Positions 1 through 44,322 of a stretch of DNA of 64,000 nucleotides are shown piece by piece. The number at the start of each line of letters is the position of its first letter. Within the stretch, counting starts at the first letter, position 1. Origin of the DNA: Eutreptiella sp. 'Long Island Sound 2002' (Eukaryota > Protista > Euglenida); NCBI GenBank assembly GCA_964036045.1, contig OZ038378.1, forward strand, positions 41,044,001 to 41,108,000, given 5' to 3'. The position numbers were made by a program, and so were the translations under genes. Below the pieces are notes generated by a model that searched no databases, had not been told where the DNA came from, and was given only the letters and a program-made list of their open reading frames with translations.

Positions 1-91
1 GTTGCGCATGAATCCTCGCACAAGACAAGGTATTGCCGACCTGAAGCAGGACTAGCCGAGTCCTGGGTCTAAGCAATGGTTACTGCGCTTT

Positions 92-521
92 GTGCCTGCT
101 GCGTTCCAGCTCTTCCGCTGCATGCTGGTGCTGGCAAAGCCGATGAAAGTGGCAGAAACGGTACCCAGTACAGGGGTCATGACAACATTGACCAAGGAAC
201 AGCGGCTTGAGTTGCAGGGAAGTGGGCTTATACTCCATCGGGAATTACCATTGGCCAACCGGGTTGCCGTTGCACAAGAGCAAATCCGCGAAGAAATGAC
301 ACAAGGATGCTCTGTGACATGGGTAGACCAGTTTTGCAAGAGCCGGTAGAGCAAAAATCCAGATGGACCACGGGACATCTCCTTGTCATGCACTGCTATT
401 GCTGTCCTCACAGGCCTGACAGTGAGATTGTCGTACGCTGGGTGGCCTTCCGCAGAGAAATTGACAACACGGGTCAAGGACGTGGCACTACATATGCGGG
501 AGTCAGTCAGTGAGCTTTTGA
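92..521 (+). pseudogene. 5' part of element A gene 1 (putative DDE-like transposase), cut by the LINE insertion
   Basis: TWVDQFCKSR...SCTAIAVL aligns with B gene 1 HDNWVKKNF...NGTVVAVL. One in-frame stop at 349. The frame resumes after the LINE at 6373. Confidence 0.65.
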
Positions 522-534
522 TGTCACTTTCTGA

Positions 535-1674
535 GTGTCTATTTTTTTTCGGTGTCTTATCTGCCATGCTTGCCCAGGATGTCGACGCCCAGGCTGTGTG
601 CTAAGTACTACACCGCCATTGTTCTGCGGCACGGGCCAGATGAGTGCCCCGCAGCATTTCACGCCCGGGGAGCCGGTCATCACTACCTCCGATTCGAAGC
701 AGCTGGCCTACAATGGCATGTTCGATGCTGCTCAATTCGCTGTTCAAAACAGTCTTTATGTACAAGCTGGCTTGGACCCACAGAAGTCCTACACGCTTGA
801 CTACGTCCAGTCTTTGACTACCCCCGATCAGCTGCTCAAGGTATTTTGGGGTGATTCGCCCTGCATCGTGATCATTGGGGAGGAGGCGCAAACAGAGGCG
901 CTGTATAGTGTGGCTGAGCACATCGCCAAGTTGCTGCCGACTGTGGGGTCCTTGTCAGTGGTGCTTCTGGCTGACCCGGCAGGGTTTGAGACGGCTGATT
1001 TCATCATGGCAGTGATCGCGGTCCAAAAAGGTTTTCCTCTCTGAGCTGAACGCATTTGGCGTGCCGATCGGGTGGTTTCCAGCTCCCTGAAAGGTAAACA
1101 GTGGATACCCTGGGTGCTGCACACAACGCACAGTTCCAGGTCGTTAATGCGGCGAGCATCGTTCAAGAAATTCTGTCTGCAGATGCCTGGCCCCGACCTA
1201 GTCTGGTACCCTGTTCCACCGTGCCCGGCAACAATGTTAGCTGTACAATACCACAAGGCATGGGAATCGGAACTCCTTGGCTGGCCTAGAACTGAGATTT
1301 GTAACGAGGTGGTTGCCCCAGGCTCGGACATAGAGCACACCAGGGTGCTGTTCACGGAGTTCGACAAGACGGCAGCAGCTGAGTTAGTGGAGCATTTCGG
1401 CCGGGCCCCGGATTTGCAGTAATGGGTGTTCCCTGGTACAATGGGACGGCGTTCCAAGAAAAACAATGGCGCCTGTCGGCGTTCATCAAGAGGGATCATA
1501 AGAGCCAGCATGCCCCGTTCCTCTTCTCGTATATCCTCGCGGGCTTCTGGGATATGGGGGAGATCTTGGGAGTGAGTACGGATGTTGCGCTGCAGGCGTC
1601 AACGTACAATCACGTTCGAATAGGTTTAACCGCGTCTGCAATGGAACACTTCCGCCCGGCAATGCTGAAGCTTA
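535..1674 (+). pseudogene. N-terminal region of the LINE ORF, unassigned (possible eroded endonuclease end)
   Basis: ORFs 535-1044 and 1072-1422 are in the same frame as the RT ORF, separated by stops. ADHKAVVLQL at about 1684 resembles the APE SDH strand, but other APE motifs are not recognisable. Confidence 0.4.
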
Positions 1675-4611
1675 ATGACGGGGGCCGACCACAAGGCTGT
1701 TGTGCTGCAACTTTCTCCGCCTGCCACGGTCGAGGGGAAACCTCGCCCACGTTTCCCGGAGGGGATGCTGAGCGATGAACAGGCCATGTTGGAGTTGCAG
1801 GAGCAAGTGGCGTCCATTTCCATTGACGATCCGGAGGACTGGTGGGCAGAGGCATTATCCGTTGTGTCCGCGGCGGGGCGTCAATGGGCTGGAATGAACA
1901 GCTCACGGGGGTTTTCGCGGGTGGAGGCCCTGGTACGCAACAGCTCACCGACACGTGTGATACCGGCGGGATGGGAGTATCCGGATGAATTAGGGGTGCA
2001 ACCTAAGACCCATCAAGAGGCCTACCAGTGCCTAGCTTCTGTCCTAGCAGATGAGCAGCGAGAGGGTCGGATGCAACCGTCCGTCACTAAACTGCGGCGC
2101 GAGATACTTAGCAAAGAGGAGCAGCGGGGGGATTCCGCAGCCAAGAGAAAAAGAGTGCAACGCCTCATGAAGGAGATGCAAGGGCGACGCATGGTGCAGA
2201 GAATGCGGGACTCATCGGGGAACTATGTCACCAACAAGAGAGACATGGCGCGACTGCTTGAGGAGTTTTGGTCCCCGATTATGAGTCCAACGGGAGTGTC
2301 TGAAGAAGAATGCGACCGCTACTTGCGCAGTCTCCCAATACCTCCCAGGGTACAGGCGGCTTTGCCGCTGTTGTGGCGTCCACTCACGGAGCACTTGGTT
2401 CGGGAAGCACTACATAAAATGCGCCCGTGTTCCTCGCCGGGCAATGACACAGTACCGGCAGCGGTATATCAGAGTATGGGGCCCCTCTTCGCACCGCGTA
2501 TGCATGCCATCATTGAGCGTTCTTTGGATCGAGGAGTGGCGCCGGAAGGCTGGTCCACCCCCATCTTGAAGTGCATACCCAAATCAATAACATCGGAAAC
2601 CGCGGCGGAGCAGAGGCCACTGGCCCTGCTTAATTCCAGCATTCAATGGCTCACGACGGTCTTCTGCTACGTGTTTCAGCAAGTCACACCTGCCCCCCAG
2701 AAAGGGTTTTTACTGGGGAGGCAGATGGTTGAGCGCACCATAGCAGCAGTGGAGTTTTGGAACCAATCGAGTGATTGCATTCTTGTGGCAGTGGATTTCG
2801 CCAAAGCGTACGATTTTGTCCAGCACACCTTTGCAAGTGCTGTCGTGCGGTACCTCGGCGTTCCTGGCCATTACGTGGTGCTCTTGGTTGCTCTTATGTG
2901 CTCCCCTTTGGTCATCGAGGTCTGCAGCGAGGTGCAGCCGGACATGGTGGTGCAGCCAGGGTCGGGGTTTCGACAGGGGGACCCATTATCACCAGCCCTT
3001 TTCTCGGTGCTGACATTGGCTCTCTTCTATGCCATTAAGAGACTCCACTGCAAGGTTGAGGTTCTGCTGTATGCAGATGATATCCTCCTGATGATCAGAG
3101 GCAGCGGAAGCACGGCACGGGCGGACGTCAGGGCGGTAATGTACGAGTTATCATTGTACGGCTACTTATCAGGGCTACGAATAAATCATCAAAAGACGTA
3201 TGCTCTGGTCAAAAACTCAGCGGGGCGGGCACCGAAGACAGTTGCAGGAATAGAGGTCACGAAGTCATTGAGGTACCTGGGGGTGCAGCTGGGAAACCTG
3301 AGTGAGGAACAGGCATATGGCACGGTAATTGTCAAGATGCTCTTGCGAGCCCGGTACATCTCGACCCTTCCCCTCACGCTAGGGGAAAAGGCGTCTGTGT
3401 TGAAAATTTGGGCTGCGCCGTGCGTTTACCTCACTGCGAAGGTCTACTTTCCCTCACCCTCAGTGGTACAGCAACTCATCGCCATACAGTCCGTGGCTCT
3501 TGGCCTGAACAGTTGGGGTCTTACACGGGACATCTTGGCAGATCCGGCGGCCATGGGAGGTATAGGGCTGGCCCCCTTGGGCGCTTACGCTTTCTGGATT
3601 CACTCACGGGATTTTGTGCAACATGTGCGCGGTACCACCCCGGGAGGAGTTCGCTCCGTGGATCAGTTTGGGAACTGAGCGCGTTCGGTGGGGATGGTGC
3701 TTACGCCCGACATGCTTCCGTATATTCGACTGGCTCCGAGGACACGTGGTCATCCAGGCACCTCATGTATAGCGTACTCTCGGTTACTTCGGCGGTTCGC
3801 AGCGCCGCCAACTCCACCAAGCGGACGAGAGGCCCAATTAGGAGTATGGCATTCCTCCCTATTCACGGACTCCAGAGGACGATCAGCAGCCCCGCCGAAA
3901 ATGGTTGGTTGTGGGTTTGCCTCTTGGCGTGAGGTTTTTAGCGACGGGTATTTGCGGCTGGATGTGTCACGACAGCTGAAGCCACATTGGCGAATGCTTC
4001 TGACGTCTGCGGGATCTGCAGTACACTCAGTCCAGTCCGGCCTTGCGGAGTGGAGACAGCGGGCTCCTTGTGACATGGGGTCTTGGCCAGTTAAGTTGAA
4101 GTCCCAGAACGTCTTAGTTGCAATTTCGCGGGGCGCAGCACCACCAGTCGCTTGCATGGGTTTGCGGACGTGGGGGCTGTTTCACAAGTTGCGCATCCCT
4201 GGATGGGATTACGATTTCGTTCGCCGCGCTCTCTGGCGGAAACTGGCAGTGGCCAGCCGGTTAATGGCTATTGCACGCTGCTCTAAATGTGCGTTTGATG
4301 GCAAGGACGAGACTCATGCTCACCTATTTGGGGAATGCCGATTTGGACAGTTCGTGCACGAAGCTGTCAGGCACACCTTTGGTCCTCCCTAGGACCTACA
4401 AGGCACTTCCATCGATTTGAGCTGTAATTTCTTGCAGAAGCAAGAGGTGGCGCTTACAACTGCTAAGGGAATTCTTACTTGGTCTGGCATGTCTGTTGCT
4501 TGGTCCCAACGATGTCACGCCGTTTTGGGGAAACAGACAGTCTCCTTACACACCATGGTCGCTCAGTGGGTGTCTAAGCTGGAGTTCTGGCGCCAGTCGA
4601 CCAACCGGTGA
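1675..4611 (+). pseudogene. Reverse transcriptase + zf-RVT-type zinc finger of the LINE
   Basis: Motifs SSPGND, RPLALLN, VDFAKAYDFV, GFRQGDPLSPALF, YADD, YLGVQL and CSKC...ETHAHLFGEC. All lie in one frame with premature stops at 3678, 4392 and 4611. Confidence 0.93.
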
Positions 4612-5607
4612 GTGCATCCATCATCTATATCCCCTTTGTTGTCTAACCTTCGTGCATGGATTGACGCTGGGTCCTTGGGTGCCTACTGGCACGTCCCGAA
4701 GGGACCACGCTATTCGCTTTCCCTGACTGATGCTCAGCGCGCTAGTTTGAAGAGCAAAAAGTTCTCTTATCACATTTCTAAAGTCTTGAAGGAAGTAGAC
4801 GAGCTACAGAGAGGGGGGTGGACGGTGGTATTCACTGATGGCTCTTCCAAGCGAGTGGGGGGCGGGGACCAGGCTGGATACGGTTGTTTTTATGGCGACC
4901 AGCACCCCCGAAATGTGAGTGCCCACGTCCCGGAGGGAGAAACGCAGTCCAACAACAGGGGGGAGGTCAGGGCAGTCCTCTGCGCCTTGGAGGCTAAGTC
5001 GGACTCTGAAAAGATGACAATAGTGGTAGATTCAGAGTACGTTTATGATGCGTTGACCAAGCACATTCTCAAGTGGGAAAAGGCGGGTGGGCGGTCCTCT
5101 TCGGGGGCAGTTTCGCACAGCGACCTCTGGATCCCAGTTTTGGCCCAAATGCGGCGTCACCAACAGGCCGCCCGTTTCATCTGGGTTCCTTCACACGTAG
5201 GGATAGTGGGAAACGAGGGCGCTGACCAGTTAGCTGAGCAAGGCCGCTTGTCCCACCCGTACAATTTGACTCGCTTTGCTAAGAGGCCTGCTTTTGATGA
5301 TGGTTTGACCCGCCAGGAGATGGAGTTGCCTTCTCATTGTTCTTGGGTTTTAAGTGAACCGGGGGAAGAAGTGGAAGGGGGGGGGGGGGAGGTCGAGTAT
5401 ATCAGCAGTGAAAGGAGCCTCACCAGTGCAGAAAATGAGAGTGCAGGGGAGTCGGAAGTGCCGTCTTATGGCGTGACCATAGATTTTACGGACAGTGGGA
5501 GCGAGGCTTACACGAGTGGCGGGGAATCGGGCGACAAGTATGAGCGATTTTTGGCTCAGTTTCTGGGTCCTGACGGATTGTTGCCGCACAAACGCAGAAA
5601 GCCTTAA
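4612..5607 (+). pseudogene. RNase H domain plus acidic tail at the end of the LINE ORF
   Basis: VVFTDGS, QSNNRGE, VDSEY and WVPSHVGIVGNEGADQLA supply the D-E-D-D catalytic set. In frame with the RT. Confidence 0.92.
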
Positions 5608-5923
5608 CACAGAGGGCACCTCCAGCACCTGACGTTCCTACTCTTCTGCGCTTCGCTTGGGCGCATGCTAAAGGAGATCAAGTGTGCTCTTCGACCTTCC
5701 TATTCGTGCTGTTCTCATGGGTATTTATAGGGTCGTTGTACCATACATTTCAGGTTTGAACAGCACAGCTGTCAGTGGCAGTCTTCGTTGAACGGAGTCA
5801 CCAGGTGCCTTTTAGCCCACAGAGCCATGCACACGCCTACTCCTCTGTGTATTTTATGTTTGACGTGGCGGTGCTTATTGGCGGTTCTGCAAGTATAGTA
5901 CCGAAGTGGTTATTGGGGTACCC

Positions 5924-5995
5924 ATCGTCGTAGTACAGCGGTCGTGCGCTTGCCCCGAGGGCTGGGGAGCGTTGGTTCGAGCCCCCGTACGGGCG
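5924..5995 (+). other. tRNA-like head of the SINE (A box / B box); not a functional tRNA
   Basis: T8 A9, D arm GTAC-AGCGGTC-GTGC, and GGTTCGAGCCC B box at canonical tRNA spacing. Acceptor, anticodon and T stems pair poorly. Confidence 0.65.
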
Positions 5996-6320
5996 GCCGG
6001 TATGGGCGCCAGGCATGGTGTGCGGCGTAGCTTGCCGTGGCTTGAAATGCGTAGTAGGTGTGTAGTCCTCGTAGAATACTTGCGTATCATCCGGTAAGGT
6101 ATCTTTTTGGGTGCGATACATATATATGGGACGTACTCTCCCCGCGCCTCGCTTGGGCGCATGCTAAAGGAGATCAAGTGTGCTCTTCACCCTTCCTGTT
6201 AGTGCTGTTCTCATGGGTGTTTACTTGGGTCGTTGTACCATACATTTCAGGTTTGAACTGCAGAGCTGTCAGTGACAGTCTTCTTTGAACTGATTTGTGC
6301 GGAGCCGGATCGTGTGAGCG
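5924..6320 (+). mobile_element. tRNA-derived SINE inserted in the LINE 3' UTR
   Basis: 9-bp duplication GGGGTACCC at 5915-5923 and 6321-6329. The tRNA-like head starts exactly at the left duplication. The tail 6149-6290 is about 140 bp similar to LINE 3' UTR 5653-5795. Confidence 0.75.
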
Positions 6321-6372
6321 GGGGTACCCGGTTGGCCAAGTATCCGACTCTATGCCAGCAGTGAGTTTTTGA

Positions 6373-7930
6373 CTGTTGTGTAGGACTTGGGATCGGATCG
6401 ACTGCCCCTTGGTCTTCTTCGCTGTCCTTTGGACATTTGCCGGGGCAACCCAAGGACTTCATCATGGCGGCCATACGGGTTATGGGACATCAATGTCACT
6501 AAGATGGCGGGATTGGGAGACGTTTTGGTCCCGTTATTGCAAGACAATCCTGGGAACCGCAACCCAGTGAAGGTATTACTTTGTGACATGAACATATGGT
6601 GGAGGTTTGCAAAGGTTGTGCACAATAGGGAGCATGCTGCTTCTCCAGTACGCGGTGCGCTCCGTGACATATGCCCTGTCTATGGGATTTGGCACGCTTA
6701 CAAGGCGTGTGTCACTGCTTTATATAAGGCTTTTTCACTTTTTTTTTCTGCCTGGGGTATGATTGCTTCTTAATGGATCCAACTGCCACACGGGTGTACC
6801 AGTACCCCGCTCTGATTGTCCTGGAGAGGCTCATTCTTTCGTGCTACCTTGTGTATCCTGCACTCCAGTCGCAGTTCGACCGTGGCTTCCGGAGTTTCAC
6901 TGTTGACAGTGAAACTCCCCTTTTGAAGGAGCGCTTGGAGGCCCTACGGGAATTATTGCAGGCTTATGTTCCTGCTGTCTTGCAGTTAGGTATAATGGTG
7001 CGTGATTGCTCCTGGAGACATGGTGCCTCTGGCACTGGTGTTGCAGCACGTGAGGTTTTAGAATGCAGCATGTTTCTGCTGCGGAAGATCAAGCCGACAC
7101 GTAGTGACGGCAACTATAAAAGCACTATCCGCATTGCTCTCCTTCTTTGGAGTTCGTTCCATGATGCATTGCCAGGTAATGCACATGTTGAAGAGAAAGG
7201 CGAATCTATGCCGTCTCGTCTTGTGAAAGCATCAAAGCATGATCTCAGTGCTACCACACTCGAGCGATATGAGTCCTTCTTTTAAACCATCAGAAAGGCT
7301 CGACAAGGAACCACGTTCCAACAGAAGCCCCATATAACATTCTGCTGCGTCCAAACGGTGCAGGGTAGGTTGCAAAACCTGTTGCACTGTTTGACCTCAG
7401 GCATGGCCCCCTTTGTAGACATCAGAACAGGTGAGATTGAGGATAATCCTAAGGCCGCCTGCGTAACTGGTACCAACATTTGGCCACACAGTTTCAAATT
7501 TCCACCTGCCCTCATGGACTCAACAAGCCTGGTTGAGTCAGAGTATATCGTACTGCACCAAAGCCTTCACACTCTTTTTTACCTCTTCGGCAAAGCGTTT
7601 GACAAGGCAGACCGCCGGGCTGTAGCTGTTCAGATGATTGAGCACCAGCAACCACCCCGGGGTCGTGACTATAGTTCCTTTTTTGATGACTATGCAGGAA
7701 CAGCTGCACACCTACGTGGAATGTTACCACATGATGCTATGGCGTTGGGATTGCCCATTTGGGAAAAGGTACCCAGAAAACGCAAAAGGGCTGATGATGT
7801 TGGTGACCAAAACGGGTCTCAGGTAGACTCCGATGATGATGTGGACCTTGATGCCGTGGCATTGGCTGACAATGAGTCGTGCTATGTTGATGCTGAAAGC
7901 GATGACGACGACTGTATCTTAGTTGGGTAG
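6373..7930 (+). pseudogene. 3' part of element A gene 1 (putative DDE-like transposase, acidic tail)
   Basis: RCPLDICRGN, LLCDMNI, PVYGIWHAYK, LGIMVRDCSW and EEKGESMPSRL match B gene 1 RVPLDIVRQN, LCVDMQI, LIYGVWHPYK, IGVLVRDSNW and EEYGEAMLSRL. Contains stops and frameshifts. Confidence 0.7.
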
Positions 7931-10900
7931 GGCTGGCAATGCTCCAGAACACGGATGTATATTGTGGCTAATGGACCTGTCATACTGCCAATGGTTGCGG
8001 TTCCACACTGTGTCCACATACCCCGCGTTTGTTGATGCCTGTGTGTCCAATGCAGTGTCCAGTGCAGTTGCCATCAGGTTGGGGGACAATGACTGACTTT
8101 CACTGTCAACTGTGAAACACCAGGTGAAGGAGGTTGGAATGTATCACATGACGATTATGCGATGGTGCGTTCATAATGCCACAAATGGCATACAAATCAC
8201 AAATCACTTTCACTGTTGACAGTGAAACCCTTGGGAAAAGGATCCAAAATGGGGGGCGGTTCAAACGATGTTCGGCATCCAGTGCAACAATCTGCGCGCG
8301 TGGCATATGATGCCTGTGGTTTCCCTCCTCCCTGCCTGTTGTGGGTCTGTGGCCAGCACGATATCACTCATGGTAGTTCATTTGCGCCGTCATTGGTAAG
8401 AATTTGGAGTGCATTTGGAAAAAAGCGGTTACTGCTTTTTCTGGTTTTGAGGCTTTTTTTCACCACTCATTGGTGAAACAAACAACCAAGCAAGGGTGAG
8501 ACAATGGAATATTTGGTCTCCACACAGAACAAGGTGAACCGAGTATCTGGCATGATAGTGACAAACGAAAACTAGTGCCCTATTGATAACTAAAGACACA
8601 TACTGCTTTGAACCAAATGGCCTGCAACACACTTTCGCTGTTGACAGTGAAACACCGTTCCAAAAGTGCCTCCAACAGGCAATTTCATGGTGTTTTGGGC
8701 TGCTTTTCTGCTACTTGTGGGTCCTCCTTGTTCTCTGCAGGATCCAGTAAAATGGAGGACGCCCCTGTGGAGCCTGAGCACCAAGACCAAGCGGAATCTG
8801 GTGAAGTGCCTACAGATGAGAAACAAGAAGACGTCGAACCGGAGCACAGTTCTGGCGGTGAAGCACATGCTGATGGTGAGGAAAGTGGTTTGGGTGAGGA
8901 GGAAGAGGAAAGTTTGGAGTCTGAAGAAGAGGAAGAGGAGGAAGTTGAGCCAGAGCAGGATGACGAGACCAAAATACAATCGCGACCGTGCATCCTGGAG
9001 GGCGGAGACGCAGAGGTTCAGCAGGTCAGACAATACATCATCGCAAGGAAGTACGTTCATGTAAGCAAGTTGATCTGGGATGACGAGCTGAAGTACGGTC
9101 AGTCACGACGTGTACAGCGACCCCGCCTCGCAAGACTCCGTCGCAGTGTCGACCACCGAGGGCTGATCGAGGAGGTCCGCGGTTATCTACTGGACACAGG
9201 AGGTACATGCCCCAACCAGTGTAGGCTTTTATATCAATCGTTTCACTGCTGACAGTGAAAGTCTCCTGTCTTGTGGCCCTGGTCTGCCTGCAGGAGACAT
9301 CCAGCTGGTGCTCGGCGGACAACACGTGTGCGCCATTGTCAAAGAACTGTAGCTCGCACTGACATCACCGACCGAGCAGGGGGGTCAAGCTGTAGCTGAA
9401 AGTGATGTACCCCGAGAAATGCGATTCAACTATGGCGGTATACGTCGTGAAGCCACACCACTGGAGATCTGCCGCCTTGCCGCACGCCTGCGCCAAAGGG
9501 CCCAGTGGAAATTCTGTGAGACTACTTTCTCTGAGGTGGCTGCTGCATTTCTGCAACGCTGTGCTGAAATCCTAAAGAGGACCGCCTAGAAGTACGCAAC
9601 GCCCGATGCTGGTGAGATCTGGGAAGTGGGCAGAGATGTTGGGGTGCCATACAAGGAGTATATGGACATTGACACAACGGTATGTGACAAGCGAATTTTC
9701 ACTTAGAGGGCCGTGTTTCCACTGAGTTTCACTGTCAACAGTGAAACTATCTCTATCTTACTCCTCAGCGTACCAAGGCTGTCAATGAGTGGAGGGGTCT
9801 GGCGCAGTTCTGTGGGATGATATTGGAAGTTGGCGACAAGTTCACCCGGGCTGTTGCGGCGTTTGACGAGAACAAGTGTTTCAGTCATGCTGCCTTCAAG
9901 GAAAGTGCTGGGCTACCGCGGAAAGTGCTGGGCTACGTACTGTTTGGAGTTTGTCAACTAGGTGGCGAGTCCACGGTCCACAATCAACACCAATAGAGTG
10001 TCCCAGAAACTCAGAAACTTGAAGTGCCTCTGTCACGTCCGGAGTCATGTGTTCTGCCAAGGCAACCCCGAGCTCCACGAAAGCCAACGTATGCATGTTG
10101 CCATCTACTCACATTCGTTGTTTCCTGATTCTACTGCCTGACGTCGCACTGTTTCACTGTCAACAGTGAAACTCATTTCGTGTCTCCTTGCAATGCAGGA
10201 ACTGAGGCCACCGTGCAGATGCTCCGTAACGCAGTCAAGTGGGATGAGAGGTATTGGGCAGTGGGTGCAACAGGCCGCGAGGCAGCGAAGTACCGGCTGG
10301 GAACTGGTCAACCGACATGGTAAAATTTGCGGAAGGCAAAATTCTGGCAGGACCCTTTGCGCGTTGACACACGCAAGTCACTGCGGGAAGCAGTGTGTGC
10401 TGAGGAGACTGAAGCTGGTAGTGGGGGGGCTGCAGCTGAGCTGGATGGAGTGTGCACTACTGCCTTTGCTGGAACCCAGGGGACGATCCACTTCACTGGA
10501 GATGTGGGCAAGCATCTGTATGCCAAGGCCCACCTCCTGTATATTGAAGTCCCAGAAGGAAGTGAGACATCACTTCTGCCGCCGGGATTCGGAAAAGAAG
10601 CTTGCTGCTAAAGGGGTCCCAGCAATCCTGTACGGTCCGAATGTGAAGTACACCCTAGCACGTGTGTTCGAGGAGGCTGCACCACTTCGGGAATGGCGGT
10701 ACACCTGTATCCGGCTGTACACCCCCCGGGAAGACCTGCTGTTCACAAGCAAAAAGCCTGAGGAGTTGACGACACGAACCCTGTGCGCTATCCTAGTGAC
10801 ACCCGGAAGTATTGCACAGAAACCCGCCATACGCTGCTACGAATTTGGAGTGGAGGTCATCGTGGTTCCACTGGCTCCTGGCATTGTTGGCTGGAGGACT

Positions 10901-12696
10901 TGTGGTATCAACTGCACCAGAGCTGCCGGCAGTTGTGGTGATGTTCAACACCCTCCGCAAACCGACACAAGTGTATGGGATGACAGCAGCACTGATTGCC
11001 TGCTTGCCTGGCTGGTTGTTGCGGCTTTGGGTACCTGGGTACCGGATGCCTGGGGAGTGGGGACCGACTCAGTCAAGCAAAACCTGGTGCGGGCTGTACA
11101 GCAATGTGCACGGGAACCAGCAGCAGACTTGCAAGCCGAAGGAGAGCTGTGGCAGGCCCTAACGCCGGTGAATGCGCAGCAACTGTGCCTGCTTGATAAG
11201 AATCTCCGACATGAAGTCAAAGCGGCAGACAAACTGAATCACAAGAGGCGGAAGTTGGTTCTGAAGCAACGGGAAAAGGATGAACTGGCGGCGGCGAAAA
11301 ACTCACTCAAGGAGAATGTTGCAAAGGTTGTTGACTACACGCAAGCAAGGCAGCATGAGATGCTCCTCGACAGCCCATTTGGTGCCCCCACCACTCCAGA
11401 AAACCGGACTGTCCAAGGAGGTTTCACCATTGACAGTGAAAGTGTCGGTCCTGAAGCTGCCTCATCCAGTGCTGTCGATCATGGGGTTCATGTGCCCCCA
11501 ACTGACCTGGAGCCTGCTTTCCATGCTGACAGTGCTGATGCAAAGCCAGCTCCAAAGCCCGCTCGTGCGAACAAGAAGGCGAAATCCAAGACCAGTGCCA
11601 AGACAGGTGCAAAGGGGCAGACTGAGCAGACAAACCTCCCTCAAATGGACCTGGAGGCTAGGGTGGATGTACAGATTATTGACAAGGCCCAGCATCAGGC
11701 AATTGCAGCACAAATCGAGGCTGCCAACAATGCGGGATCTGGCGGACGAGGAGCTCCAGGGCTGAAACGCAAACCCAAAGCACAGGCCGTGACCATCCCC
11801 AGCGTAGCTCAGCTTGAGCAGGCTTCGCGGAGGACCCGCTTTGCAAAGCAGTAGGCTGAATGGGAGGACCTGTCAGTTGTGCTTTTTTGAGAACTGCTTC
11901 TGCTTGTACTGTTGTTGTCCTGTAAACACTTGCTGGTCTGCTGGGTCATCACATTGTACTGTTCACTGCTGCACTGAGTTTCACCGTCAACAGTGAAACA
12001 CACTGCCACCGTGGCCTCTGTGGCCGAAATGCTTGAAGCCATCATTCGTTTTTCTGCTCTGTGATAATATACTGTTTCATTGGGCAGTGCACTGCCCTCA
12101 TTTCAGCTTTTGTTTTCCAACAGACAACAACACTGGGTTATAAGCCCTAAATTTTGCCCTTGAGCTGCTGTCTTGGGCTGCTATTGCATCACCCGCACTG
12201 TGTATCTGCTGATTGCTTGCAGTCGAAAGCAGGCACAAAGTTTTTACTTTCTACCTGCTATTTTTTTTATTATTTTTCTATCTGCTTTTTACAGGTTGCA
12301 CCTCTAAGTGCATTATAAAGATGTGTTTCACTGTTGACAGTCAAAGTGTCTCCCATGCTGGTGTGATTTGCCAGTTCCAGAGTGTGGCATCAGAAGTACA
12401 GTCTTACAACACATGTAGCGACACCGTGTGTACACGTACCGTGCCTGTGTTTTGTGTTGCATATTTACATACACCTGTTTCTCACAGGGGAAGTTGTTCG
12501 TGTATGACTGCAGGCCACCGCCGTAGACTGCATGGAAGGGGGGGGTTCTGGCGATACGGTGTGCCACACCTCAATGCTTCCACAACAATGTTTCACTGTT
12601 GACAGTGAAACAATATGAAATATGAGCCCCACACTGGGGTTTTGGGAAATTGAATTTTTCTGTGAGTTTCACTGTTGGCCACGGAGGCCAACAGTG
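6895..12696. repeat. Dispersed 20-bp palindrome TTTCACTGT-TG-ACAGTGAAA, 11 copies plus a derived hairpin
   Basis: Starts at 6895, 8098, 8208, 8633, 9241, 9727, 10152, 11422, 11979, 12326 and 12591, with 0-2 mismatches and both orientations. Derived hairpin at 12670-12696. Not seen elsewhere in the window. Confidence 0.95.
8752..11854 (+). pseudogene. Element A gene 2: spliced ParB/Srx-like domain protein with methyltransferase-like C-terminal region
   Basis: Predicted exons 8752-9202, 9294-9679, 9769-10088 and 10199-11854 with GT-AG introns. Splicing joins HVSKLIWDDELKYGQSRRV...YLLDTGG to DIQLVLGGQHV in frame. Internal stops and frameshifts are present. Confidence 0.7.
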
Positions 12697-12770
12697 CCCG
12701 TTTTTGCCCGTTTTTGGGCGCCGCAACGACCCGGTATGTCATGTTCGTACCCCCAAGACGGAGGCCCCAC

Positions 12771-13155
12771 CGAGGCCCCCACCGCATGGGTGTGGGGGCC
12801 TCCTTCGCTTTGGGACCACCGGGGCCTCCGCCGCATGGACGTGGGGGCCTCCTTCGCTTGGGGATCACAGAGGCCCCCACCACATGGGTGAGGGGGCCTC
12901 CTTCGCTTTGGGACCACCGAGGCCCCCGCCGCATGGGCGAGGGGGCCTCTTTCGCTTTGGGACCACCGAGGCCCCCGCCGCATGGGCGAGGGGGCCTCCT
13001 TCGCTTGGGGATCACCGAGGCCCCCGCCGCATGGGCGTGGGGGCACCTTCGTTTGGGGACCACCGAGGCCCCCGCCGCATGGGCGAGGGAGCCTCCTTCG
13101 CTTTGGTATTACCGGGGCCCCCGCCGCATGGGCGCGGGGGCCTCCTTCGTTTTGG
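12771..13155. repeat. GC-rich 49-bp minisatellite, about 8 copies, each with an internal inverted repeat
   Basis: Unit approximately CGAGGCCCCCRCCGCATGGGYGWGGGGGCCTCCTTCGCTTTGGGACCAC. GAGGCCCCC...GGGGGCCTC can pair. Confidence 0.92.
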
Positions 13156-15386
13156 GACCCGTGGGCGTGGCCGGATGGATGTAGAGGATGGCTTTAGAGG
13201 AAGCACGAACACCTTTGGCACAAGTGCCGTGCGCTGGGGGAGGGGGGGGGATCGGGCCACGGACCAAGCCCTCATGACCCGCCGGCCATACGCCGCCCAG
13301 TCGGCAGTCACTCGTGGGCTACGGGCCCACACCCGTGAGACAGCGTCCCCCTTCCCTTGGGGGGGTGGTGGACCGTGCCGGAAGTGGAGCCGGCGCTCCG
13401 CCTCGCCCCCCAATCCGTGCCCCTGGGGGGATCCAGCAACGTGTAGGGCGGGAGTGCACGCGCGTTGTGCGGCCCAGGGGACAAGGGGAGGAGACGAAGA
13501 GGAGAGCCGCCGCCATGATGCTTAGCCGGACGGGTTGGGACAGAACCCCCCTCTCGGTCGCTGGCCAGACCGATGAGGGCTGGCGGGCACCATGGGGATG
13601 TGCCGCGGGTGCGCCCGACCGGGGGACCGCATCTCCTCCTCCTCCTCCTCCTCACCACCTGCATGGAGTGCACAGTACATACAGGTCCTGCGCCCCAATT
13701 GGGCTCTCCCTGTGTGGAGAACTGCCTCACCCGCATCCAACTCAGTGGCTAAGCTGACTTTGCTGTACATACCTCTAGGCCACTGCTGCCTAAGCACGGT
13801 GTCTGCCTTGATGGCTGGACTCACCAGTGTCGGAACAAAAAAAAGGGGGGGTTGGGACGGGAACAAGCCCTCCATTGGAGGGTGTATTGCCTTCGTTGGA
13901 CGCGATGAATTGCTGTTGAGCGTTCCGTGCGCGGGAGGGACAACAACGCACAAGGGGAGGCACAAACAGCGCGGAAGAGTGGTGGGCGCATGGGGTATAG
14001 ATTTGCTGGGGGCGAGGTCAGCTCTTGGCGTTGTACGCGTACTGGTTGTGAGGGGGTCATTGCAAATTGGAGTGCGCGGTGCAAGGGAGGCACGGGCTAG
14101 CTGAGGGACAACTAGTGCGTCGCGGGGTGCTCCCGGTCACCAGGATGAGGAACCGGGGAGATCGCTTGGAGGCGCATATGGACCTTGCATGGCTCGTGTT
14201 GCGCTCCCATCCGCATACGGCGACCCGGAGGATACACTCCGGGGAGTTGGGGGTGGTAGAGGTGGAGAGAGAGAGAGACGACGCCCGTTCGGGCATCACC
14301 CGGACGAGCAGGGGCTCCAAGGGCCCTTAGGGAAAGGGTGTAGGGCGGCCCAACAAGGCCCAGAAGACCGGCCCCACTCTCCCAAGTCTCCCCACCTTCC
14401 CCCCCGTCGCCCAAGTGGCGGATTGGCTGCAGAAGCAGCAGGCCAAAGCCCAGTGGCAGCAGCGGGTGGTGCTGGCGGAGGGGGAGGTTTTGCGGCCGAG
14501 GGGGAATCTGTAGGAGGCCTAGCAGGATGTCCAACGGGCCCGGTGAGCGGCGAAGGCGCCGGAGATGGAGAGGGATCAGCTCCGCACGCGGGTGAAGGAG
14601 CCGGAGGCACACAGGCCAAAGGGGTAGGGGCCCGTGCAGCGGCAACAGCAGGGGGTGGTGACCGGCGGGGCGGCAAGGTGGCGGGGACACGACCGGGAAG
14701 GGCTGGGGGGTGGGGGGGGGGGGTTGCACTACCTCTTCGGTGTTGCCCAGGCATGGCGGCGGCAGGCCGAGGCCGCCAAGGGCCAGCTGCCCGCCATGGG
14801 TTCGACGGTGTGATTATTGCTGTCGCAGCAAGAGGCGGGGGCAGCTCGGCAATATGGAGACTGTCCTCCCCAACTATGCGATGACAATGTCAAACCATGA
14901 CATTGTGGCCTCCAAGTACCCACCACACAGAGACCATGGTGAAGGCTGCCTGCACCCCGGATTCTTCGATCCATGAACTGCCCGCGGGATTTGGGACGGG
15001 CAGCAGTGGGCCAAGCCTCACCGTAGCGCCCTTCTAACCGTTGTACATTGGATATGGAACAATGTCGCAAAGATTGCGCGATTTTCGCGCCATTCATGCA
15101 CCGAGACTTTCATGTGCGTATTTCAGAAGATCGCAATTTTCGCACATCTTTCGAATAATTTTGCTGTGCATTTCCGGATGGTTGTGCGTTGCACTCTGCG
15201 GTGCGCTTGGAATCAACTAAAAACTGCCACGGGCTGCACCTTGCACAATATGAAGTGACCTCGAATGTTCTGCCACCTGTTTCGTGCTAGTGCTCTCTTA
15301 TCTTTAGGCCGCGTGGCAGTGGATCCAAGGGAAGGAGCGCCTTCGCCCATGTCAAGTCCAGACAACAAAAGGCACGTCGACTCAAG

Positions 15387-37754: not shown

Positions 37755-40567
37755 CGGCCTATAATTAACTGCTATTCTAGTCGCTAGTCAAATTCCAAAT
37801 AAACGCGTTTATGCGTTTATTTTCCAAAAAACGCCCATTTTTGGGCGAGAATCGCTGTTTATTGATGTTTATTGATGTTTATCGGTGTTTTCACATATTG
37901 TTGCATGCATTGGGGAAGGTTTTGGGTTGCCTTGTTGTGCCATTCGCTTGCAAGAATTATCCTCTCTCGTCTTCTTGTTTGTTCACCCTTCAGACCCTCT
38001 TTTCCTGTCTCGCATCTCGGGATGGGTGGTGATGTATGGATGTGCCGCCTCGGTCCGGTCGCTCCCGAGGGTGCCGATTGGATGCATTTCAGCAATGCCG
38101 CGGCTGCCCTCCAGTACCTGCACTCCCCTGACGGTGGGTCATTGAAGAAGTTGGCCCACACCCAAGTCATACGCGCCGCCAAGGCGGATGGCACGCGTGA
38201 TGGCCGGGCCTTCACCCTGAAGAAGCCGGCGTCTAGTTCAGGCGCATCGGCTGCCCCACGTCCGTCGTCCTCACGTCCCACCCCCTCCCTAAGTCCTTTT
38301 CTTCTTGTTCCGGTAAGGTGTGCATGTTGTGGTGCAAACATTTGTGGCACCAAGTATTCTTGTCAGAGGTGACACAAGGTGGTTGATGAGGCGTGCATGG
38401 CCATGGTTGGAGCAACTGTGCACTGCTTCTCGTGCACCTGCCGTGCCTGTGGACAGGAAGTGTCCACGCCTGATGTGGAATGTCACACGTGTCATTTCCG
38501 CGTGTGTCCGGGGTGCACCACAGATGGTATTTGCACCTCTTGTGTTGAGAGGTGCCGGCCGTCTGACCCCCCCTCCCCCAAGAAACGGCAGTTCAAAAGG
38601 GAGTGGCTTCTTACCCGGTCTTGGCTACGGTATGATGCTACAACGGACAAGATGTGGTGCATTGCATGTCAACAGTACCCTCAACTTGGCCACTCTGTTC
38701 CCTTCGTGCAAGGTACTTCAAACTTCATGCTGTGGTCCCTTAAGTATCACCAACGGTCGGGCTCACACGCTGTGTCCTTGGCCTTGTGGCAATCAGGTGG
38801 TCCGGTGACGTCGGTCATTCAAACCTTGCCCTCTCATGTGCTACAGGGCATCCTGGCCCTATTCAGGACCGTGTACAGGATTGCGCACCGCTCTGGTCCC
38901 CTCAGACATCTAGAAGGGCATGCCGAGCTCGTGTCACGCAATGGAGGCACAATTATCTCAACTTATCGTTCACCCCCCTCCGGTAGGGAGGTGCTTCCCT
39001 TTATTTCCCATCCATTTCGCATTTCCCAGGGTCTAGTAATCAAGGAGTCTTCTTTTTTCATCAGACTCATGCACAGACCGCGCAGCAAAGAAAGAAGAGC
39101 TTTTTTATGTTCGTGCCGTGGTTGATGGAGTGATGGCTACCAATTATTTCTCTTGCCAACCCCTCCCCTCCGGCACCGCTCCAGGAATAGTCACTGCATT
39201 GAAACGGGCCATGGCCCATGCAGACGTGGATCTTGGTGTTTGGATCCGTAAGCTCTTTTTCTACTACGGGGATGGGGCCAGTGTGGTTCAAGGCGAATGT
39301 GGTGGGATTATCCGCATCGTCGGCGACCTACAGAAGGAGATCGCAGGGTACGATGTGGTGGTGCCATACCACGCATCCTGTCACAGATGCGAGCTGGCCT
39401 TTAAGGCCGCCATCGGCACTGACCATGTGTTTCTTGATCTGCTTGCTGACATGTTGCAGTCTGCTGCGTTGTTTCGGAATAATGCTCCCTCTAGGCTCAA
39501 GACATTGCATGCGGTGGCTCTCGCCCTCGATGCCGCATTCTTGAAATTAGGGGTACTGCACACTCGTCGCTGGTGTGCTTTTGCAGCAGATGTCTTGCGC
39601 CGTGTGAAGCGGTGCTATGTGATTGTTGTGCTTGGTTTGCGTGAGGTACACGTGAGCAAGGCAGCGAAGGCAGCGAAAGCGTGGGGAGCGGAGGAACGTA
39701 GATCCGAGGTTTGGGCACGTGGGGAAGCTGCTTGTCAGGGAACTTCCACATGTGCCTACCTCCCTCATTTCCAAATATGCCAAGGGTTTGGTGAAGGTAG
39801 GGTTTGACACGCTGCAGGTCCTGCCATGTTGCACAGTCAAGGATCTCATGTCAGCAGGTGTGTCAAAGGGCCATGCCCTGCAACTCATGAACTCATGGGA
39901 CTCAGGGTCATCATCAGGGAGCAGTAGTGATAGCAGTGACAGTAGAATTCTGATCAGTAGTGACTCGGATGTGCCCGCCCCGGGGGGGTGGGGCACGGCA
40001 CAAGTAATGCATCAGGACAAGGGGGGGGGGGGTATCCGGACTGAGCAGTCCACAGTGCTAAGCTTTTTTCATGCGCAGGGTATGGATTACAGGAAGGGAT
40101 GAGCCAAGATTATTATTCACATGCAAACGCAAACAGCGGGGAAAAAAAAACAACACACGCAGGAAAAATCATTTCAATTGAATGAAGGTCCCAAAAATAA
40201 ACATTTGAATGAAGGTCCCAAAAGTAAACATTTGAATGGAGGTCCCAAAAATGAACAAGGATTGGGAACATCCAAAAATAAACAGCGTGGGGTTTGTTTT
40301 GTACCAAAATTAAAGACATACAAACATATCTAAACATGTAGTAGAGAATTATACAGACCTCAATGGTACCAGCCACATAGAACAAAGTGGTGTCCTATGA
40401 AACTGCAATGGAAGGAATAGGTATAAGGAGGCAAGCAGCTGCAGAATGACCATTTTTGCAAACAATTTGTTTAAAAAAAAGGTAAAAAAACAACAAATTT
40501 TCACCAAAATAAACAAGTTACTAGTCACTAGTCAAATGGCCTTTGGATAGTGTTTATTTAGAGGCTG
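37755..40567 (+). mobile_element. hAT DNA transposon (ZNF862/TTF-finger type), decayed
   Basis: Imperfect TIR CGGCCTATAATTAAC / CAGCCTCTAAATAAAC. 8-bp duplication CTAGCACG (37747-37754) / ATAGCACG (40568-40575). Subterminal 27-bp tandem at about 40190-40255. Confidence 0.85.
38379..39807 (+). pseudogene. hAT transposase with TTF-type zinc finger; frameshifted and C-terminally truncated
   Basis: KRQFKREW...WLRYD...MWCIAC...FVQGTSNF...LKYHQRSGSH, then GDGASVVQG and YHASCHRCELAF. Confidence 0.88.
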
Positions 40568-41074
40568 ATAGCACGGGGGTCCCCACTTCCCCCCCGGACC
40601 TTCACCCCCCCCTCCTCTTTCAATGCGCAATCTCGCAAAAATTCCATGGCATTTATTCGGGAAACCATCCTCTTACCCTTGAGGCCAGAGACCTTCGGAG
40701 AAGTGGGGTGTTTCCTAGACACCCTCCCCCTTCCCTGCCAAAACCCCTCTCCCCTCCCTTGGCACACGCTAGAAGACCCAATCTCGTTCTAGCCTAGATG
40801 GCGCCAGAAGGCTAGAACGGAAAAAAAGAGTTGCCCCCCCCCCGTGGGGGGTGTGTGGGTACTTTGAGGGTTGTAACCTGGACCCCCCTATCCGTACTCG
40901 GGGGCCCATGGTTTTTTCCCCACAATTTTGCTGTTTTCACCTGCTTTTGGAGTCCAAAAAAATTTTCGTTCTACCGACGTTCTAGCGACGTTGTAGCGAG
41001 CGTCGCTAGAAAGTCGCTGGAACATCGCTAGACGGTCGCTAGAACAATATATATGAATGCTCCGCCACTCCTCA

Positions 41075-43906
41075 AAGAGAAGCTGCCCTGGCTACCATGG
41101 CCAGCTGTGGCCAATTACAGGGTCGCGATGCTCGACCCGACTCACGGAGCGCCGCGTCCCCCCCCCCCCACCCCCCGGTTAGCCCGGTTAGCCCCCCACC
41201 CCACCCCACAGGTCACTTGGAAGGCCACTTGGCGGGCCGGCGCCGGGTCACCTGGTGGTGGGTTAGCCCAATTGGCCCGGTTAGCCCAATTAGCCCCCCT
41301 GCCCCCCAGGCCCCGTTTCGCGAGTCGCGACACGTAGGCTACCCCTCCTGCGTGGTGGGGGGTTGCCGGGGCGCATCCTTGCTCCCGGCACCCCCCTTCT
41401 CACCCCCCGTGTCCCCTTCCTTCTCACCCCCCTTCTCACCCCCCTCCCCCTTGTCGTCACCCTCGTCACCCTCGTCATCCCCCGTCGTTCCCGTCGTCCC
41501 GCCCCTCCAAGGCCGCCCGGAGATGGGCCTCCACCTCCTCCGGGGTGCGGAAGAGGAGCTCCCCCGGCACCCGGAAGGTGCCCCCCTCTTTCTCCCGCTT
41601 CCTCTTCTTCCCCTTCTGCCCCTTCTCCCCCCCCTCCCCGGTGGACCCCCGCGACACCACCCACCAGTCCCCCGGGTCCAACTCCTCATCCCAATCCCCC
41701 AACACCGTCACTTGGCTGACGGTCCCCCCATTGCCCCCCTCTGCCCAAGGGACATACCGAGTGTCCCCCACACCCGGCACGTTCCCATAGGGGTCCCAGC
41801 CCCTATTCTCCAAGGGGGGGGGCTTGGCCTTGCCCTTGGCCTTGGGCTTGGCCTTGGCCTGGGCTGCGGGGGGGGGGCGTCTTCCTCGCTACTCTTCAAG
41901 TGGCGGGGTTTCTTGGGTTTCTTGGGGGCCTGGGGGGGGGGGGGGGGGTTGGGTTTGGGGGTTTCGGTGGGGGGTGTCCTCTCCCCGCTGGCACTGTTGA
42001 TGCTGCTGCTGCTGGTGCTGCTGCTCCGCCTCCTGCTGCTACTCTCCCCTCCCTCCTCCCCCACCCTCACCCAACCCCTGCGCCGCGGGTCCATGCCCCC
42101 CCCGCTCTCGCCTGCCTCCCAACTACCCAACCCGTACAACACCGAGAGGGCCATGTTGGGGTCATTCCCCAACATCTTGCCCAATTCGGTGACCCCACGA
42201 GGTGCGTCCGGCCTCCCCCATCGCGCCACTCCACCCGCACCCCGCGGGGGTCGGCTCCACACGTCTGCAGGCTAACAACCTAAGAAGAGAAACAAGAGGT
42301 AGGTGTTTTCTAGCGGCGCTCTAGGCAACTGTTCTGGCGACATTCTAGCGACGTTCTAGCGGCGCCGGCGGCGGCGGCGGTTTGGCTAGATCAACGCTAG
42401 AACGCTTCCCTAGATCAACGCTAGAAGGCATTCAGCATACCGTGCCTTGCCTGTCGAGGCTGGGGGAGATAGCCCCCAGGGCCTTGGCGAAGGCATCCCG
42501 GGGGTTGCGGGGATGCGGCTGCAAGGATCCCCCCGTTGCGGGGGTTGTGGGGGCCTTGGCCTTGGACTCGGGGCGGGAGGCGATGCTGTGCACCAATCTG
42601 GCATACGCCCCCCGGGTGGCGGCCGACGGGTCGATTCCCCCGATCCCCATGATCTCCGACCACGTCAGCGTCTACGTCCACGTTCTCCCAACGCACTCCA
42701 TACCCCCCAGTCCCATCGCCTGCCAGCAGTGGGCGATGAAACGCCAGTGCCCTCCCCCCTTTTTGACGTCGGGAGTGAAGACGTTGAGTTGGGCCAACTC
42801 AAACATCTTCACCCCCTTTTCGGAGGGGGGAGGGGGGCTACCCCCCTCTTCCTCCCGGGCAACTCCGGTTGCCACCACCAGGCCCCTGTTACCCCTGCCA
42901 CCCGCAGGGGTTTGCCCTGGTGGACCCCTCCCTCGTCCGCCCATACCCACCTCCCCTGCCCCAAAATTTGTGATGCACACGGTGCATAAAAAAACGGAGA
43001 GTCCAAATCGGACTCTCCGGGGGGACGAGGAGGGGTTGGTCGAGGTTTGGGGGTTGGGGGCCGGCCAGGACGGCGGGGTCTCATGGCAGGCCCTGGATGG
43101 ACCCCGCCTCCCTGGCCCCCCCCCCAAAACTCTTAGCCACTACCCCGCCCCCACCGCCTTCTCCTCCACCTCCTCCTTCACCTTCTCCTCCACCGTCTCC
43201 TCCACCTCCACCTCCACCACGTCATCCACCACCTCCTCCTTCACTTTTGCCTCCTTCACCACGATCTCCTCTATCCGCCTGACGCTCCTCTCCAGCTGGC
43301 GGATGTTGTCCTCCTTGTCCCTCACCTTCCGCCTCGCCTTCTCGAGGTTGGCGGCGGCCCAACCCTCACGCTCCTCCTCCCCCTGGGCGTGCAGCGCGTC
43401 CACCTTGGCCTCCCACGCCACCACCTTGGCCTCCGCCCTGGCCTTCGCCCCCCGCTGCGCCCCCAGGGAATTGGAGAGACTTTGTAGCTCCCGACGCAGC
43501 GACTCTAGCTCGTGCTCCTCGTCCTCCTCCACCACCGCCTCCGGCTTGACCGCCTTGGCCGACTTCTTGGCGGCAAGGGGGTGAGGGGGTGGCAACGAAG
43601 GAGGAGGATGTTGGGCTTGGGGTTGGGGCTTGGCCAGGGGTTTTGCCTTGGGCTTGGCCTCGGCCTCGGCCGCCCGGTGGCGCATCACGTCGGCCAGCAA
43701 CTCCGCGGTCTAGCGTTGCTAAACAAAAATAGCAGCAGCGTTCTAGCGACGTGCTAGGCAACTGTTCTAGCGGCGTTCTAGCGACGTTCTAGCAACCGAT
43801 CGTGCTGCCTAGATCAACACTAGAATGCTCCCCTAGATCATCGCTAGAACGCACGATAAAATACCTTTTCCAAAATCTGCTCGATCAAATCCTGCTCGGC
43901 GGACAT
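41075..43906 (-). pseudogene. Element C gene 2: spliced, low-complexity coiled-coil protein of unknown function
   Basis: ATG at 43906. GT-AG introns at 43710-43864 and 42280-42440; the first joins MSAEQDLIEQILEK to TAELLADVMRHR in frame. E/K/A-rich heptads. Later stops and frameshifts. Confidence 0.6.
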
Positions 43907-43909
43907 GTT

Positions 43910-44322
43910 GCTGATGCTGAAGAGTCTGTCCGAGGGAAGCCGGCATGTGGCCCCGGCCCCTCCTCACCTCCATGGCATCCCTGCCCGAGCATGGAATTTG
44001 AGACCGGGGCCCCCGGTGCACAACCCACGACATGTCGAAGTATGCAAACAGCCATGTCATGCATTGTGCTTGCACAACGGCCTCCCTGTGGATGGCCGAC
44101 CATTTACGCCCTGACACCTCGTCCACCCCCTCCACCTGACACCCCCCCCCCCCAATTGGCTGTGCTCGTTATGACCATGTTTCAGAAAGCACTTAATGCT
44201 TTCTGAAATGTCACCGCACAACATGGCCAACCCAAATGGTCAAATGTTCTGCAACATGGCATCTACATCGTGCTCTAGGCTCAGTAGATACCATGATGCT
44301 GTACCAATGGTACAATGCCTTA
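43910..44322 (-). pseudogene. C-terminal part of the element C transposase, downstream of the B insertion
   Basis: Removing B plus one TA gives GCA CTC TTA AGG CAT, continuing as SWYLLSLEHDVDAML...GDISESIKCFLKHGHNEHS, the putative catalytic E region. Confidence 0.65.

Follow-up and report, generated by a model that had tools for sequence, protein, structure and literature searches.

In En/Spm (CACTA) elements, the transposase acts at the terminal inverted repeats (TIRs), and a second protein, TNPA, binds 12-bp subterminal motifs, brings the element ends together and represses the promoter. KorB, a member of the ParB family, recognizes about a dozen dispersed palindromic OB operators on IncP plasmids, many of which lie at promoters. 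VANDAL elements of plants encode VANC proteins that target element-specific noncoding motifs. ParB-like accessory genes are also present in algal transposons. Giant Plavaka elements of red algae, which belong to the EnSpm/CACTA clade, encode PAG3, a protein with a weakly ParB-like N-terminus (HHpred E-value 0.29) and a putative 2-oxoglutarate (2OG) oxygenase C-terminus (doi 10.1101/2025.02.11.637652). Tandem inverted-repeat arrays adjoin the PAG3 gene, and the protein has been proposed to bind and modify its own transposon (doi 10.1101/2025.02.11.637652). Sola1-1_Ec32 of Ectocarpus has an accessory gene that combines ParB-like and DNA methyltransferase parts, and a role for the product in binding and modification of the element itself has likewise been suggested (PMC12477816). 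Fusions of ParB, helix-turn-helix and Dam domains are described in chlorophytes and chytrids (Iyer et al.). Here we describe transposon A, an 8.4-kb cut-and-paste (TIR) family of the euglenid Eutreptiella sp. 'Long Island Sound 2002'. A copy lies in a 64,000-nucleotide stretch of contig OZ038378.1 (assembly GCA_964036045.1, positions 41,044,001 to 41,108,000 of the forward strand), which is called the window below. The family has two genes, a putative transposase (gene 1) and an accessory gene (gene 2), and carries a palindromic site that is found in no other DNA that flanks or interrupts its copies.

Family A resembles the Plavaka elements in being a TIR transposon whose accessory protein has a weakly ParB-like N-terminus and that contains inverted repeats. 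The ParB evidence is marginal in both cases, with the HHpred E-value of 0.29 for PAG3 and an hhalign P of about 0.005 for gene 2 of A. Unlike PAG3, however, gene 2 has no detected enzymatic domain, and instead of tandem arrays family A has about 17 single, nearly invariant sites of 20-22 bp across the whole element, including its introns and coding sequence. The A transposase matches none of the Plavaka or EnSpm models, and the element termini are CTT...AAG, not CA...TG. Sola1-1_Ec32 is also a eukaryotic TIR element with a ParB-like accessory gene, but no methyltransferase domain is detected in gene 2 of A, and the two elements differ in superfamily, size (8.4 kb for A versus 21.5 kb) and gene orientation. 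An earlier note on this DNA, made from the sequence alone, had supposed that no eukaryotic TIR element of this kind was described. This proved incorrect, given the ParB-like PAG3 with nearby inverted repeats (Petroll et al. 2025) and the ParB-like gene of Ectocarpus Sola1. The combination of a ParB-like accessory gene with an element's own repeats has thus already been proposed for algal transposons, and family A differs in its transposase lineage, gene 2 content and site layout.

The other systems share single aspects with the design that we propose for A. En/Spm uses two proteins, the second of them on repeated motifs. However, the TNPA motifs are short, not singly palindromic and only subterminal, TNPA is not ParB-like, and En/Spm makes 3-bp target-site duplications (TSDs). 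On IncP plasmids, as in A, palindromes are scattered over a mobile replicon, and the reader belongs to the ParB family in KorB and is proposed to be ParB-like in A. In contrast to A, the KorB system is bacterial, depends on cytidine triphosphate (CTP) through a GERRxR box that is missing in A, and has a ParA partner; moreover, a KorB-only profile (with R751 KorB as its source) has no similarity to gene 2. VANDAL elements resemble the A proposal in that an element-encoded protein targets element-specific noncoding motifs. They belong to the Mutator superfamily, though, VANC is unrelated to gene 2, and the VANC motifs are short tandem repeats rather than 20-bp palindromes.

Family A is a class II TIR transposon, in agreement with the earlier note: it has 22-bp TIRs, 5-bp TSDs and many copies. 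The full consensus measures about 8.37 kb. Copies L001 and L002 each carry the 22-bp TIR, CTTGGGGGTACGAACCTGACAT, at both ends, and the window copy has it on the right. TSDs vary by copy and are ACAGT in L001, CCACT in L002 and CCCCC/CCCCT in L003. There are dozens of copies, and fragments of the gene 1 open reading frame (ORF) were located on 15 or more contigs of the ENA assembly ERZ25074135, which is also the source of all but one of the paralogues that a protein search returned for the ORF of gene 2 exon 4. Contigs of that assembly are up to 7.8 Mb long, with a coverage of about 40-58x, which points to a eukaryote assembled from a metagenome. The copies L001 and L003 are internal-deletion derivatives; L001 is without the ParB-like exons. 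Two further copies, L006 and L007, are older and are 80-85% identical to other A copies. The window copy extends from before position 1 to position 12757, its left 1.5 kb preceding the start of the window, and is interrupted by a 5.8-kb retroelement at 522-6360. Both of its genes carry stops or frameshifts. The span of 6895-12754 that had been given for the element must be corrected to these limits, which include the foreign retroelement.

The window contains 11 copies of TTTCACTGT-TG-ACAGTGAAA, all within 6895-12610, and this agrees with the number in the earlier note. The search used TTTCACTGTTGACAGTGAAA with up to three mismatches, and 100 shuffles gave an expectation of 0 sites in the window by chance. 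No site was found in the remaining 58 kb. The A consensus has 17 full sites, 14 of which are perfect, as well as a half-site on the left and a split palindrome on the right. Four sites lie in its first 550 bp, and three together with the split site lie in its last 800 bp. Sites also precede gene 1, at distances of 70-185 bp, and gene 2, at distances of 119-650 bp. Conservation covers a 22-bp unit, (G)TTTCACTGTYRACAGTGAAA(C), with sharp edges and unconserved flanks. Its half-sites may resemble those of bacterial parS, as the earlier note proposed. The center of the palindrome is always the asymmetric TG/CA, and all 20 positions are conserved in sequence, including this unpaired center.

These palindromes are private to family A. 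Six copies, comprising 41.8 kb of A-family DNA, contain 65 sites with at most two mismatches, whereas 129.5 kb of flanking and inserted DNA contains none. In 241 million metagenome records of the Joint Genome Institute (JGI), the exact 20-mer occurs six times, each time singly and on unrelated contigs. The sites hold the same positions in all A copies, including those that are only 80-85% identical. In L006 and L007, divergence is 8-10% at the sites and 13.5-15% in the remaining columns (pooled Fisher p=0.003), which is modest evidence that the sites were under constraint while the lineage was active. Site 1 lies within the coding sequence of gene 1. The matching segment of P0023, a distant homologue of gene 1, is unconserved and of about equal length, so substitution rather than insertion created this site.

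Related elements carry different palindromes. Family B, also in the window, is the only relative of A with homologues of both genes. It has seven GCGAAATTTCGC palindromes, at 44527, 44600, 47142, 47210, 48696, 49417 and 50570, and none occurs outside B. Like those of A, they are found in pairs upstream of genes. The ends of B begin with CTTAGG and those of A with CTTGGG, and the flanks of B fit a 5-bp TSD at four of five positions. The TIRs of both families lack similarity to the palindromes. A second DNA specificity is therefore needed, which fits a two-protein design like that of En/Spm.

Element D (L002 6022-9935) is 3.9 kb long and noncoding, with no called gene above about 60 amino acids. 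It is inserted exactly within one of the palindromes of A, and it has a TIR, CTTAGGCGTCACAAGTTGCCCGCCC, that starts with CTTAGG, and the TSD TCACT. About 25 copies of CTGGCCGAAATTTCGGCCAG are spaced roughly 70-200 bp apart within it, and 15 of these have a perfect 16-bp core. Because this nonautonomous element keeps little but its ends and dense palindromes, the palindromes presumably act in cis through a protein supplied in trans. Element C encloses B at 40756-52715 of the window. A 43-nt inverted repeat at 40756/52673 (91% complementary) marks ends that begin with CTTGG, and GTTCTAG-S-CTAGAAC palindromes and TTCTAGCGAC repeats lie near both ends. No clear TSD was found at the ends of C, and no genes were assigned to it. 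D and C have only the CTTRGG-type end in common with A, apart from the 5-bp TSD in D. The TSDs CCACT, TCACT and ACAGT hint at a CACWG-like target preference, which resembles the half-site of A itself.

Gene 2 encodes an accessory protein of roughly 880 amino acids. It has four exons and three introns, with one palindrome in each intron. Exons 1 and 2 are separated by a 91-nt GT-AG intron that contains site 5, and the spliced peptide quoted in the earlier note is real, because the two exons join across this intron. The junction reads ...KYGQSRRVQRPRLARLRRSVDHRGLIEEVRGYLLDTGG followed by DIQLVLGGQHVCAIVKEL; the end of exon 1 is also quoted as ...YGQSRRVQRPRLARLRRSVDHRGLIEEVRGYLLDTGG before the same DIQLVLGGQHVCAIVKEL. 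Within exon 4, at 10780-11060 and at the homologous positions of L001, L002 and others, about 80 codons can be read in two frames. One of these is used in the window copy (...IRCYEFGVEVIVVPLAPG...), and the +1 frame is used in eight further copies (...HPPYAATNLEWRSSWF...).

A spliced profile of gene 2, assembled locally from A (four copies, with X at stops) and B, was compared by hhalign with a ParB N-domain profile. The latter was deliberately diverse and comprised KorB and eight phage ParB or ParB-like nuclease sequences. The two align over 51 columns with a score of 23.4 (P 0.003-0.012, probability 4-11%). Column shuffles gave a mean of 11.2 +/- 2.4, and only 2 of 400 scored as high as the real profile. 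The register is the one predicted from the motifs: QxR aligns with the QPR box, a helix with the L..L..SI..G helix, and GGQH with the GxRR box. GGQH may resemble the GGCHR and DGQHR variants of sulfiredoxin (Srx) and DndB-type members. On this sequence evidence, the N-terminus of gene 2 is somewhat more likely than not a divergent ParB/Srx-type domain. The assignment of gene 2 to the ParB/sulfiredoxin fold that had been made earlier is weakly supported by the expected register of the spliced profile, and the missing arginine box and the lack of library or PDB matches speak against it.

Several results weigh against a ParB-like protein as the reader of the sites. Since the intron splits the domain, library and PDB searches used contiguous pieces of gene 2 only. 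With an E-value limit of 10, these pieces of A or B, taken singly or combined into A+B profiles, matched no entry of Pfam, PHROGs, NCBIfam or PADLOC, and PDB sequences gave chance matches only. The probability from hhalign is low, and the region was picked after the motif had been seen. No signal was obtained in hhalign with P1 ParB alone or with a profile of 120 near-identical KorB sequences. The arginine box of ParB, GERRxR, is missing, its place being taken by GGQH(V/M)C in A and GGQHVF in B; because this arginine-rich CTP box is missing, a canonical CTP-gated sliding clamp is unlikely. A helix-turn-helix was not demonstrated in gene 2. An AlphaFold model of exon 4 residues 1-205 had a predicted local distance difference test (pLDDT) score of 43, which is unusable, and the models of gene 1 and gene 2 are both of low confidence. 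In young A copies, the divergence of the sites equals that of other columns, as expected of dead copies. Finally, gene 2 is broken or deleted in every copy examined, and L003 lacks it altogether but has an intact gene 1.

Other searches with gene 2 were also negative. When the exon 1 piece was compared exhaustively by phmmer with 1.84 billion representatives, nothing but fragments of family A was returned, and a search for an intronless homologue found none. The C-terminal two-thirds of the protein (exon 4) has no domain in Pfam or NCBIfam. A methyltransferase or 2OG-oxygenase C-terminus was considered and rejected, as neither Pfam nor NCBIfam gave a match in the exon 4 products P0003, P0004 and P0005 or in the B ORF.

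Gene 1 is a putative DDE-type transposase. An alignment of A, B and P0023 reveals conserved blocks with D, D and E residues (for example VTWADQF/VLWVDNF, LLCDMNIWWRV/LLDVDIYWRV, GIWHAYK and VEEKGE), and these blocks would fit a DDE transposase. The gene 1 products have no match in Pfam, PHROGs, NCBIfam, PADLOC or PDB sequences, apart from one weak match of a gene 1 piece to DUF6589 (E 0.05) that was not reproduced with full-length proteins. No relatives were found in the JGI metagenome scan. An AlphaFold model from a six-sequence alignment had a pLDDT of 31, which is too low for fold comparison. Membership in the KDZ (Kyakuja-Dileera-Zisupton) group was rejected: queries with P0014, P0013 and P0023 retrieved no Pfam family at E-values up to 10, and the TSD is 5 bp, not 7-8 bp. 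Elements of the CMCT clade (EnSpm, Mirage, Chapaev, Transib and Plavaka) have TSDs of 2-5 bp and 5'-CA...TG-3' termini (PMC12730594). The 5-bp TSD of A agrees with this range, but the termini of A, B and D are CTTRGG...CCYAAG. An H(3)H motif, WH.YKH, is present in B and P0023, the corresponding A sequence is WHAYKA, and no clear C(2)C was seen. The 5-bp TSD, together with H(3)H in B and P0023, recalls the CMCT clade, but the termini are different.

P0023 itself is an intronless gene 1 homologue of 731 amino acids that is 32-36% identical to gene 1. It is encoded on L004 and L005, contigs of 2.5 kb that come from further ENA and Logan samples. Near-identical variants are found on several contigs of about 2.5 kb, without the A-type palindrome. 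These contigs might represent transcripts, in which case a relative of the gene would seem to be expressed in a different organism.

We favor the explanation that the palindromes are cis-acting sites for a family-specific, element-encoded and probably dimeric DNA-binding protein, most likely the gene 2 product with its divergent ParB/Srx-like N-terminus, and we assign this a probability of roughly 0.45. An element-encoded reader is favored because the sites are restricted to the family and because related families have different private palindromes. Binding of the sites by any protein, the identity of that protein, and the consequences of binding are what we infer here. The proposal that the gene 2 product or the transposase reads the sites, which was part of the earlier note, gains comparative support from the private palindromes that differ among A, B, D and C.

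If the gene 2 product does read the sites, it might coat or bridge them, by analogy with TNPA of En/Spm, KorB on its OB operators, and the proposal for red-algal PAG3. The bound protein could join both ends of the element in preparation for transposition. Another possible role is regulation of the promoters of gene 1 and gene 2, because sites lie upstream of both genes. Alternatively, the protein could mark the element against silencing.

It is also possible, although we consider it unlikely, that the gene 1 transposase itself binds the palindromes, either as extra subterminal and internal sites or as a transpositional enhancer, and that gene 2 has an unrelated role. The clustering of sites in the subterminal regions would be explained in this way, and the nonautonomous element D both retains and multiplies its sites. 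In addition, L003 has an uninterrupted gene 1 of 709 amino acids and still has palindromes without any gene 2, and gene 1 differs between A and B just as gene 2 does. However, the dissimilarity of the TIRs and the palindromes would require the transposase to have two specificities. Perfect 20-bp dyads that extend across introns and coding sequence would be unusual as transposase sites, and the position of gene 2 is the same in A and B.

The sites could instead act through the structure of the nucleic acid, or a regulator or silencing factor of the host could bind them, which we regard as rather improbable. Such a structure might be a hairpin or cruciform in a single-stranded intermediate of transposition or replication, or an RNA hairpin in introns and untranslated regions. 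When single-stranded, each site can fold into a 10-bp stem (-9.2 kcal/mol, z = -4.3), and every one of the three gene 2 introns contains a site. However, many sites are outside any transcript, and the conservation extends to the sequence of all 20 positions rather than to pairing alone. Unrelated palindrome sequences in the same architecture across families fit element proteins that co-evolve with their sites better than they fit one host factor. A passive build-up of small mobile insertions or of repair footprints is a very improbable origin for the palindromes, and we rejected it: bacteria and organelles do have short palindromic mobile units, but the sites are at fixed positions in all copies, even the most diverged, site 1 involved no insertion or deletion relative to P0023, and the 129.5 kb of nonelement DNA has no sites.

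A broader proposal, which is doubtful at present, concerns the elements with CTTRGG ends and 5-bp TSDs, namely A, B, D and perhaps C. These might form an unclassified superfamily of eukaryotic cut-and-paste transposons whose transposase matches no curated model and that depend on a sequence-specific accessory protein derived from ParB/Srx and on 15-30 private parS-like palindromes per element. This arrangement would amount to a plasmid-style module for self-recognition or condensation that was rebuilt in a nuclear transposon, with protein and site co-evolving and nonautonomous elements competing by multiplication of sites.

Table 1. Features of transposon A and of the related family B in the window
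Feature	Coordinates	Strand	Basis or remark
Family A gene 1 (putative transposase), 5' part	1-521	+	93% identical to L001 7634-8154 and L002 1705-2225; homologous to P0014 and P0023
Family A gene 1, 3' part	6361-7930	+	Colinear with L002 from 2214 onward; ORFs 6387-6773, 6773-7285, 7358-7930; premature stop 7283-7285 in window copy
Palindromic site 1, within gene 1 coding sequence (reads FTVDSE)	6895-6914	.	Motif search
Sites 2 and 3 (8098-8117, 8208-8227), spacer between gene 1 and gene 2	8098-8227	.	Same positions in L002 (3952, 4062)
Site 4, 119 bp upstream of gene 2 ATG	8633-8652	.	Motif search
Gene 2 exon 1: acidic N-terminus, then first half of ParB-like domain (YGQSRRV...)	8752-9202	+	Paralogous ORF P0024 92% identical
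Site 5, gene 2 intron 1 (9203-9293)	9241-9260	.	Motif search
Gene 2 exon 2: GGQH motif and downstream helices; in-frame stops 9350-9352, 9587-9589	9294-9679	+	L002 has Trp at first stop
Site 6, gene 2 intron 2	9727-9746	.	Motif search
Gene 2 exon 3, 3' end approximate; short duplication in window copy	9769-9920	+	Reading of window and L002
Site 7, gene 2 intron 3	10152-10171	.	Motif search
Gene 2 exon 4, C-terminal two-thirds; nonsense codon near 10318 and frameshift near 10600 in window copy	10198-11854	+	No Pfam/NCBIfam match
Site 8, within exon 4 coding sequence (reads FTIDSE)	11422-11441	.	Motif search
Sites 9-11 (starts 11979, 12326, 12591), 3' untranslated and right subterminal region	11979-12610	.	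Motif search
Split palindrome: two half-sites around GC-rich spacer; degenerate in window copy	12666-12697	.	Sequence inspection
Right TIR ATGTCATGTTCGTACCCCCAAG; following 5 bp ACGGA would be the target duplication	12736-12757	-	Comparison with ends of other copies
Family B, related element	44319-50929	+	TIR CTTAGGGGGCCTTAATTGCCCG; flanks AATGC/AGTGC
Family B gene 1 homologue	44802-46262	+	24-25% identity, E 1e-10 to 5e-17
Family B gene 2 homologue	47669-47862 and 47946 onward	+	25% over 132 amino acids, E 0.002; domain split by intron at same place as in A

The window as a whole appears rich in transposable elements and has frequent poly-G/poly-C tracts of 15-20 nt. An Rfam scan of it gave no match. 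The retroelement at 522-6360 is a full-length retrotransposon without long terminal repeats (non-LTR) within gene 1 of A. It encodes a reverse transcriptase (Pfam RVT_1, E 5e-19), and it also has a region like ORF1 and an ORF that was judged RNase H-like by reading its sequence. Its target duplication is about 13 bp (CAGTGAG-TTTTGA), and its 3' tail includes a 150-bp direct repeat (5640-5790 and 6140-6290). At 12767-13159, starting 10 bp past the right end of A, a 49-bp unit is repeated eight times in tandem (86% matches). The ORF at 38379-39125 encodes a zinc finger of the C17orf113 type (Pfam PF25431, E 4e-10) and is probably part of another transposon. A satellite of approximately 192-bp units (8.8 copies, 85% matches) occupies 55562-57277, with relatives at 52990-53600; similar DNA is present at L002 15750-16360, on another contig of the same assembly. 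In L007, positions 1380-5300 represent a separate repeat family, in which tandem and inverted CTCAGTGAGCGCTCACTGAG units surround a 396-amino-acid ORF that has no relation to gene 1.

The gene 1 protein may mark a lineage of transposons that current annotation pipelines overlook. That the noncoding element D is so dense in sites points to possible competition for the reader. Practical use of the family is limited by the broken state of every gene 2 copy seen. If a ParB-like protein does read the sites, family A would provide a clean test of a transposon-borne "self" label and its reader, which so far have only been suggested for algal transposons. The sites are long and nearly invariant, DNA outside the family is without them, and at least three distinct versions occur on related elements, so the specificity of protein for site would be directly testable.

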